Positions 2 to 3,242 of a stretch of 64,000 nucleotides of DNA are shown here, one piece after another (position 1 is the stretch's first letter; each line of letters begins with the position of its first letter). The notes beneath the pieces were generated by a model. It saw nothing but the letters and a program-made list of their open reading frames with translations. It had not been told where the DNA came from and searched no databases. The position numbers were made by a program, and so were the translations under genes. The stretch lies in the sequence record MT586120.1. The stretch is one strand, 5' to 3'.

Positions 2-496
2 GACAACTACACACAGCCCGAGAGGACGTGTAATTCATCCGCTTGTGCTATGGCTTTGGAATACTTCAAGCCAGGTACTCTACACGGTCCTAAAGGCGAT
101 GATGAGTATATTAGGGAGGTCTTCCAAGTAGGAGATACTACCGACCATTGGGTACAGACAGAGATTTTAAGAAATCACGGCATTGAATCTACATTCAAAT
201 ATGATTTAGATTTTGATGACCTTGATAAAGAATTAGAAAACCGTAGACCTGTTGTTATTGGTATCCTCCACAGGGGACCTCTATATGCCCCGTCAGGCGG
301 TCATATGATTGTTGTGATTGGTAGAACCGAGAAAGGTGACTACATCGTTCACGACCCATATGGAGACCTCTACGATGGATATACAAGCACCGTATATAAT
401 GGTAGCTCTGCTGTATACGAAAGAAGAGTATTAGAAAAGAGATGGACGTGCGACGGTAGTCGTTCAGGATGGGGTAGAGTTTTTTTTCCACAGTAG
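2..496 (+). CDS. Peptidase C39-like (papain-fold) domain, 5'-truncated by the window edge
   Basis: Frame is open from base 2: DNYTQPERTCNSSACAMALEY (catalytic Cys motif), then GGHMIVVIG (His) and HDPYG (Asp). The track's ATG at 50 lies downstream of the Cys, so it is not the true start. Confidence 0.7.
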   Translation, partial: DNYTQPERTCNSSACAMALEYFKPGTLHGPKGDDEYIREVFQVGDTTDHWVQTEILRNHGIESTFKYDLDFDDLDKELENRRPVVIGILHRGPLYAPSGGHMIVVIGRTEKGDYIVHDPYGDLYDGYTSTVYNGSSAVYERRVLEKRWTCDGSRSGWGRVFFPQ

Positions 497-1005
497 AACC
501 ACCTAACTCTATCTTAGGGGTTCTACCAAATTCAGGCATACAACTAATCAAAGAATTTGAGGGGCTTCACGTCCTAAGAAACGATGGGTATATTCATGCC
601 TATCCAGACCCACTCTCAGGAAATCTACCAATCACTATTGGCTGGGGTTCCACTAGAAAGCTGAATGGTTATCCGTTCAAGCTTGGAGATAAAATAACCA
701 GGTCTGATGCTGATGAATTACTAATAAATCAGTTGAAGGATGAATACTTATCTACTCTAGAAAGAGAAGTACCTTACTGGAGAGAAATGAACGACAACCA
801 GAGAGGAGCTTTGTTGAGCTTCGCATATAATCTGGGAGCACATTTCTATGGTAGTGCTGGTTTCAGCACAATAAGCCGTGTTCTTCGGGAAAAGGAGTGG
901 AATAAAGTCCCTGATGCGCTATACTTATACCGAAACCCAGGCACAAGCGTAGAGGCAGGCTTGACCCGCAGACGCATTGCCGAAGGTGATCTTTGGAAAT
1001 CTTAA
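478..1005 (+). CDS. GH24 (phage lysozyme) domain with no start codon of its own; probably reached by -1 frameshift from the upstream ORF
   Basis: Frame 1 is open 478-1005: GIQLIKEFEG...AYPDPLSGNLPITIGWG...QRGALLSFAYNLG...GLTRRRIAEGDLW. No in-frame ATG/GTG/TTG before TTG 733, which is downstream of the catalytic Glu. Confidence 0.85.
   Translation, partial: SFFSTVEPPNSILGVLPNSGIQLIKEFEGLHVLRNDGYIHAYPDPLSGNLPITIGWGSTRKLNGYPFKLGDKITRSDADELLINQLKDEYLSTLEREVPYWREMNDNQRGALLSFAYNLGAHFYGSAGFSTISRVLREKEWNKVPDALYLYRNPGTSVEAGLTRRRIAEGDLWKS
481..526 (+). promoter_or_regulatory. Candidate -1 programmed ribosomal frameshift signal (slippery heptamer plus hairpin)
   Basis: T_TTT_TTT at 481-487 in the C39 frame, 5-nt spacer, then hairpin GTAGAACC-A-CCTAA / TTAGG-GGTTCTAC (493-526; 13 bp, one bulge, 7-nt loop). 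Confidence 0.6.
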
Positions 1006-2659: not shown

Positions 2660-2821
2660 ATGTCACGCTACGATCAAATTTTAAAAAATCTAAAAGAAGC
2701 AATCTCCAATCCCCATCTATACAATGAGGAAGAGATTCGTTTTATGAAGACACAGCTTCGCGAACTAACAGAATCAAAGCAACAATTTCTAAGAGAAGAT
2801 AAGAATGGATTTGGCTCTTAA
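2660..2821 (+). CDS. Small hypothetical protein (53 aa, not in track)
   Basis: MSRYDQILKNLKEAISNPHLYNEEEIRFMKTQLRELTESKQQFLREDKNGFGS; fills the gap and overlaps the def start. Confidence 0.65.
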   Translation: MSRYDQILKNLKEAISNPHLYNEEEIRFMKTQLRELTESKQQFLREDKNGFGS

Positions 2822-3242
2822 AATTGTAGGTGAAACTTGCCTTACTGAACCATCAATAGTAATTGATGAAATTACTGACGATATTATCAATCTCTCCAAC
2901 AAAATGAAAGAGAAGATGGTTCAGTGGGACGGTATAGGATTAGCTGCACCTCAAGTTGGACACAACATCCGTCTTATTGTTATTCGTTTCAGCAGCGGCA
3001 AAATACAGGAAATGATTAATCCTAGGATTAGTTGGACTTCTGAAGTGCGAAAGAAAAGCCAAGAGGGATGCCTAAGCATTCCAGGAGAAACTATTTGGGT
3101 TGAAAGACCATCTAAGGTCCGTGTGAAATTTCAGACTGCCGAAGGTGAGTTTAGATACTGGTGTCTCCATAAGATGGATGCCCGAGTATTCTTACACGAG
3201 TATGATCACCTTGAAGGTATTTTAATGACTGACCGACTATGA
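2805..3242 (+). CDS. def: Peptide deformylase
   Basis: GIGLAAPQVG, EGCLSIP and HEYDHLEG motifs. Confidence 0.95.
   Translation: MDLALKIVGETCLTEPSIVIDEITDDIINLSNKMKEKMVQWDGIGLAAPQVGHNIRLIVIRFSSGKIQEMINPRISWTSEVRKKSQEGCLSIPGETIWVERPSKVRVKFQTAEGEFRYWCLHKMDARVFLHEYDHLEGILMTDRL

Follow-up and report, generated by a model that had tools for sequence, protein, structure and literature searches.

In Escherichia coli, the dnaX gene gives rise to tau and gamma through a programmed ribosomal frameshift of -1 (-1 PRF) on a homopolymeric heptamer, X_XXY_YYZ, with a stem-loop 5-6 nt downstream, and a long and a short product are obtained. In insertion sequences of the IS3 family (IS911, IS150), the zero-frame ORF of the orfA-orfB pair ends shortly after a heptamer of the A_AAA_AAG type, and a downstream structure stimulates the slip. 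The tail assembly chaperone genes G/GT represent a conserved case of -1 PRF in phages, in which a short and a C-terminally extended protein are made at a fixed ratio. In phages, -1 frameshifts have been described not only for tail chaperones but also for genes of capsid decoration and DNA packaging. Lysin genes of enterococcal and clostridial phages also yield two products from one gene, a full-length enzyme and a shorter product at a set ratio, via an internal in-frame start.

The endolysin gene of Synechococcus phage S-CAM7 described here is probably another recoded gene, from which a canonical -1 ribosomal frameshift would produce a peptidase alone and a peptidase-lysozyme fusion. The gene lies at the left edge of the stretch of 64,000 nt that was analyzed (the window), and all features of the window given below are located on its plus strand. 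Like dnaX (PMC5009743), it exhibits a homopolymeric heptamer, a downstream stem-loop and predicted long and short products, and a class of its relatives carries the identical A_AAA_AAG heptamer. Relatives of the ACG-2014f type share the dnaX topology, in which the slip would lead to the short product, whereas in S-CAM7 and S-PM2 it would lead to the long one. The S-CAM7 heptamer also differs in consisting of U only, and the gene codes for a phage lysis enzyme, not for a replication factor. While an upstream Shine-Dalgarno (SD) stimulator is a feature of dnaX, the S-CAM7 candidate is inseparable from the coding of a conserved motif (see below). With the IS3 family, the gene shares a -1 ORF that lacks its own start and a slip that would fuse two functional domains; it is, however, not part of a mobile element, both of its domains are peptidoglycan hydrolases, and no covariance model of Rfam 15, frameshift elements included, matched positions 380-640 at E-values up to 10. 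The likeness to G/GT consists in a conserved phage -1 arrangement with a predicted short and a predicted C-terminally extended product. In contrast to G/GT, the S-CAM7 gene adjoins nrdB, GIY-YIG, CpeT-like and deformylase genes instead of being situated between tail tube and tape measure, and its products are enzymes with hydrolase domains and not chaperones. In lysins with internal starts, the extra product is a C-terminal binding domain, whereas for S-CAM7 an N-terminal catalytic domain obtained by recoding is predicted. The closest counterparts are the in-frame endolysins of the ACG-2014f type (phrog_3617), which have the same two domains in the same order with the same linker length and are 65-70% identical to the S-CAM7 pieces, but are encoded by a single uninterrupted ORF without the S-CAM7 hairpin. 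Full-text literature searches turned up no paper that describes frameshifting for an endolysin or a cyanophage lysin, nor one with data on the two protein products or a junction peptide, and the available portion of a large review on recoding mentions no frameshifted endolysin (PMC5009743).

The two reading frames and their junction

Over its first 3 kb, the window shows 100% identity to isolate 0809CC03 of S-CAM7 (MT586120.1), a T4-like cyanomyovirus of the Kyanoviridae. The endolysin gene occupies positions 1-1005 and consists of a peptidase and a lysozyme piece connected by one -1 frame change, both of which are colinear on one 405-position family profile, phrog_3617; its 5' end lies outside the window, 211-247 nt to the left of the edge. 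Each of the two frames was searched, aligned and tested for selection separately. The zero frame enters at the left edge and ends with a stop codon at 494-496. Its complete ORF (L001:2753-3496) comprises 247 aa, or 235 aa if counted from the ATG of the KU686212 annotation. This piece matches the papain-like cysteine peptidase family Peptidase_C39_2 of Pfam (PF13529; 1.7e-10, 42.1 bits vs. a cut-off of 24) and the PHROG family “endolysin” (1e-108), and its catalytic-type Cys and His residues, C93 and H184, are invariant across the relatives (alignment A3). A sequence search of the PDB for a solved relative of the peptidase returned noise only.

The -1 frame is open from position 478 to its stop codon at 1003-1005 and contains a complete lysozyme of the GH24 type (Phage_lysozyme, PF00959; 2.5e-19, 70.3 bits vs. 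a cut-off of 22.3). The match spans profile positions 8-125 of 125, corresponding to about 592-984 in the sequence, and PDB lysozymes and endolysins are matched with a best value of 4e-10. The codon of the catalytic Glu is located at 559-561, and E28, D44 and T53 of the GH24 domain are invariant (alignment A2). From 478 onwards, this frame exhibits no ATG, GTG or TTG before a TTG at 733, which is 174 nt past the catalytic Glu codon, and no hidden canonical start codon for the lysozyme was found. The Pfam matches and ORF positions thus agree with an earlier note on this DNA, which had described a C39-like peptidase frame that meets a complete, start-less GH24 lysozyme in the -1 frame, and the ORF scan bears out its statement on the missing start codons. 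In GenBank, the lysozyme region is represented only by a “lysin” remnant of 72-90 aa without the catalytic half.

The peptidase and lysozyme frames share 19 nt (478-496). Within this overlap, a T-only heptamer of the X_XXY_YYZ type lies in zero-frame register, which permits re-pairing of both tRNAs in the -1 frame, and it is followed by the zero-frame stop. A stem-loop of 13 bp with one bulge and a 7-nt loop (493-526), the putative stimulator of the frameshift, begins after a spacer of 5 nt (canonical range 5-9 nt) and holds the zero-frame stop within its 5' arm. Its folding energy is -16.7 kcal/mol (z -4.9), and none of 200 shuffled sequences folds as well. Positions and fold of heptamer, spacer and hairpin are as the earlier note had given them. 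The homopolymer itself was rejected as a statistical signal, with five T8 runs in the window against 3.8 expected; what stands above chance is that run, register, spacing and hairpin occur together and that this combination is conserved. The purine-rich stretch at 466-474, which the note had proposed as an SD-like stimulator, is indeed present. As its codons specify the invariant GWG(R) motif of the peptidase, which is also found in the in-frame fusions, it provides no independent signal, and a role as stimulator is inseparable from coding. A fold of 131 nt contains a possible upstream element (434-487), in which the U run is paired to purine-rich sequence approximately 40 nt upstream, with a small hairpin in between. 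Inspection of the region between the two frames for a promoter or terminator revealed nothing of note, and no phage tRNA genes were detected in the window.

In the proposed mechanism, ribosomes translating the C39-like peptidase frame would reach the U-only slippery heptamer and be stalled on it by the stem-loop that starts 5 nt downstream. A fraction of them would re-pair both tRNA-Phe one base back and enter the GH24 frame, yielding a bifunctional peptidase-lysozyme of about 405-417 aa, a predicted product exactly as long as the fusion that ACG-2014f naturally encodes in one frame. For the remaining ribosomes, translation would end three codons later, and the peptidase would be released by itself (235-247 aa). 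We infer that the slip is ribosomal; its efficiency would set the proportion of the two products, which may be relevant for lysis.

Conservation of the junction and layouts among relatives

The three S-CAM7 isolates 0809CC03, 0910CC49 and 0910SB42, deposited as separate records, show scattered differences and an identical junction. Two metagenomic contigs from different samples, L008 and L009, also keep the 19-nt overlap and the T-only heptamer. The former is 98% identical to S-CAM7, while the latter exhibits amino acid identities of 87% and 91% in the two pieces. A metagenome-wide scan for further lineages of this T type revealed none beyond L009 (the same contig as L088). Between S-CAM7 and L009, the lysozyme frame shows a dS of 0.56 and a dN of 0.046 (omega 0.08), and the omega of the peptidase is 0.17; in its other two frames, the lysozyme region is interrupted by 13-16 stops. 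The low omega of the lysozyme frame reflects strong purifying selection and indicates that this start-less frame has been translated throughout the existence of the split.

At the nucleotide level, S-CAM7 and L009 differ at 153 of 1244 positions (12.3%). Their longest identical run, 58 nt at positions 440-497, extends over the nucleotides that lead up to the heptamer, the heptamer and the stop codon of the zero frame; according to a rough calculation from the 12.3% divergence, the chance of so long a run covering a pre-specified point is approximately 0.004. L009 retains the hairpin at 493-526; its stem differs by two substitutions, each of which turns a Watson-Crick pair into G.U, and the energy is unchanged. 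Because the T-type cassette is present in only two diverged lineages, the S-CAM7 stem shows no double compensatory change. An alignment of relatives, as suggested in the earlier note, reveals the conserved split, while the changes in the S-CAM7-type stem are limited to these two G.U pairs.

A total of 83 loci from GenBank phages and IMG/VR, the latter of which contains 513 relatives, were classified by script. In-frame peptidase-lysozyme fusions account for 29 loci, including ACG-2014f with 405 aa, and one further locus, S-CREM1, is a fusion in reverse order. At 19 loci, a lysozyme in the -1 frame starts from an ATG of its own, which is part of an ATGA overlap, and has a longer N-terminus, and the heptamer is lacking; lysozymes encoded as separate genes have their own ATG in every case. 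Another 29 loci with 24 distinct junctions, including that of the model phage S-PM2, carry the lysozyme in the -1 frame behind an A_AAA_AAG heptamer with overlaps of 13-61 nt (the A class), and five loci are of the S-CAM7 type with the T-only heptamer and the 19-nt overlap. That 53 of 53 split pairs are in the -1 frame was discounted as evidence, since ATGA-coupled genes are in this frame by construction and the loci are phylogenetically related. Folding of the 66 nt after the heptamer resulted in a z of -3.5 for the T class and a median z of -2.8 for the A class, with 76% of values below -2, as compared to medians of -0.2 for the corresponding 66 nt of in-frame fusions and -0.7 for ATG-coupled genes. 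Reverse-order (lysozyme-peptidase) in-frame fusions were also found at L104-L106 and L007, the two domains being joined in both orders.

In the A class, the A_AAA_AAG heptamer is invariant amid variable surroundings in all 24 distinct junctions (S-PM2, L005:1450-1545; L042-L087), and the run consists of six A plus G. The codon that provides the first base of the heptamer encodes Ala (6 junctions), Val (15) or Thr (3) and always ends in A, which the homologous codon does in 1 of 20 in-frame fusions. The zero-frame stop directly follows the heptamer in 20 junctions and is separated from it by one codon in the remaining 4. Within one sub-lineage of ten sequences, a 14-bp stem is 99.3% paired (RNAalifold) and has four pairs changed on both sides; this covariation was matched by none of 500 shuffles, and pairing dropped to 30-46% when the partners were slid. 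With the exception of S-SRM01, no ATG is found before the catalytic Glu in the A class. The split of S-PM2 is present in its 2005 record as well as in the re-sequenced record; S-PM2p154 is annotated merely as a 72-aa “putative lysin.” The A-class junction is thus a predicted -1 PRF cassette of textbook form, which would make the inter-domain linker of this endolysin family a site of recoding. The sole uninterrupted fusion within the frameshifting clade, L050:1992-3212, still has the downstream stem (z -3.2) and represents either a recent switch of architecture or an artefact of metagenome assembly. S-SRM01 (L006:1475-1545) combines an A-rich heptamer with its own ATG in an ATGA overlap and shows no downstream structure (z +1.0), and its lineage appears to have exchanged frameshifting for translational coupling, or the latter for the former.

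A neighbor-joining tree built from the peptidase domain places the S-CAM7 group inside a marine clade, all other members of which are in-frame fusions with the same 27-codon linker. This position implies that the split is derived. A set of 20 distinct fused relatives was compared over the homologous 38 nt. A mean of 4.3 of the 13 S-CAM7 pairs can form in them, which is the level expected by chance, and the folding energy averages -4.8 kcal/mol (best -7.9) vs. -16.7 kcal/mol in S-CAM7. The S-CAM7 stem would accordingly have arisen together with the split or later, and a stem as young as the split or younger argues for selection on frameshift efficiency and against a merely tolerated lesion. The earlier note had regarded in-frame homologs without the hairpin as evidence against frameshifting. 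Such homologs are indeed the closest relatives of S-CAM7, but they are taken here to indicate a derived S-CAM7 cassette and not as a refutation.

The in-frame fusions of the ACG-2014f type (L004:1501-1566; also L026 and L034-L036) exhibit an A_AAA_AAG heptamer in register, a 5-nt spacer and a GC-rich stem of 8 bp (-13.5 kcal/mol) in their linker. Across the five loci, the 37-nt cassette has one variable column, in which the change preserves a G.U pair, as compared to 11 variable columns in the 40 nt upstream of the cassette and a gene-wide rate of 12.7%. A -1 slip at this site would lead to termination after one sense codon and to a peptidase-only product, as in dnaX. Should the ACG-2014f cassette be genuine, three lineages would arrive at one and the same pair of products, each through a layout of its own. 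It is conceivable, though we advance this with some reserve, that cyanomyovirus endolysin genes are under family-wide selection for two isoforms, achieved via three recoding layouts at the same inter-domain linker. S-PM2-like phages may use A_AAA_AAG and a covarying stem, with the slip leading to the long form; S-CAM7 may have acquired a U-only heptamer and a newly evolved stem from an in-frame ancestor; and ACG-2014f may carry a dnaX-like cassette inside an in-frame fusion, with the slip leading to the short form. If true, this family would contain the first recoded endolysin as well as a natural series of frameshift cassettes that arise and flip.

Alternative explanations

The programmed -1 frameshift put forward in the earlier note is supported by the split in five sequences, the omega of the lysozyme frame, a hairpin found only with the split and the A_AAA_AAG cassette of the sister clade. 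Its main rival is transcriptional slippage, in which RNA polymerase stutters on the T8/A8 run and the resulting mRNAs of altered length encode the fusion, while ribosomes read normally; at the sequence level, the two processes are indistinguishable. Efficient transcriptional-slippage sites are runs of nine or more A or T and require neither a register nor a downstream stem. The S-CAM7 junction is a homopolymer of eight. UUUUUUU and AAAAAAA are avoided in E. coli genes, possibly due to transcriptional slippage, and the proneness of UUUUUUU runs to such slippage and to indels counts against a ribosomal frameshift (PMC4066793). According to the recoding review, Thermus dnaX works by polymerase slippage, and U_UUU_UUU is far less shift-prone than A_AAA_AAG in E. 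coli, which likewise counts against frameshifting at the S-CAM7 site (PMC5009743). However, the run of the A class, six A plus G, is too short for efficient stuttering, and the same architecture is nevertheless present there. The heptamer is in exact zero-frame register, which a polymerase does not require, and the conserved, split-specific hairpin 5 nt past the run is a hallmark of ribosomal and not of polymerase stimulation. Slippage by the polymerase is therefore regarded as unlikely.

The gene might also represent a tolerated “savior” lesion, i.e., a recent frameshift in an ancestral fusion for which spontaneous low-level slippage suffices, the hairpin being incidental and the ratio of products not programmed. 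This scenario is compatible with the nesting of S-CAM7 inside a clade of in-frame fusions, with a second lysozyme-like gene in the phage (1622-2245) and with a stem that lacks double compensatory changes. A point against the frameshift reading itself is that an uninterrupted fusion serves all other members of the S-CAM7 clade, so that two products may be dispensable. On the other hand, the split has persisted over a dS of approximately 0.5 with an omega of 0.08 on the downstream frame, the linker acquired a stem of -16.7 kcal/mol at canonical spacing that is found in 0 of 20 fused relatives, and nowhere is the gene pair better conserved than at the junction. A lesion that is simply tolerated consequently appears quite improbable.

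The lysozyme could, in principle, be initiated independently, from a non-canonical start or by re-initiation after the peptidase stop, which would result in two proteins and no fusion. Separate, ATGA-coupled lysozyme genes do exist in S-SRM01 and at 19 metagenomic loci, but every truly separate homolog has an ATG, whereas S-CAM7 exhibits no ATG, GTG or TTG between 478 and the catalytic Glu codon and the only such codon of L009 is unshared and lies inside the stem; initiation of this kind is very improbable. Faulty sequencing or assembly, or a gene that is dead, is dismissed as extremely improbable, although the error-prone nature of homopolymers and the annotation of just a 72-90 aa remnant could be cited in favor. 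Three isolates and two metagenome contigs, which stem from different samples, have the identical junction and amount to five independent sequences that share the split (against the assembly error producing a plain fusion that the earlier note had considered), the analogous split of S-PM2 recurs upon re-sequencing, and the lysozyme-frame omega of 0.08 speaks against a pseudogene.

Possible consequences for annotation, and neighboring genes

Lysis of marine Synechococcus is a major term in ocean carbon flow. If the predicted frameshift is real, this lysis involves an enzyme whose muramidase dose is set at translation, and the annotations of S-CAM7, S-PM2 and many metagenomic cyanophages, in which a “lysin” stump lacks the catalytic half, are wrong. 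Moreover, fused, split-coupled and two frameshifted versions of one gene would then provide a comparative system for the origins of slippery sites and stems.

The second lysozyme-like gene mentioned above is located 600 nt downstream of the endolysin gene (1622-2245). Its product resembles a peptidoglycan hydrolase (PF18013, “Phage tail lysozyme,” 1.8e-14) and has a hydrophobic, signal-like N-terminus. CpeT-like and peptide deformylase genes are typical auxiliary genes of cyanophages, and a CpeT-like, phycobilisome-related gene (1016-1426) and a peptide deformylase gene (2805-3242) flank the lysis genes in the window.
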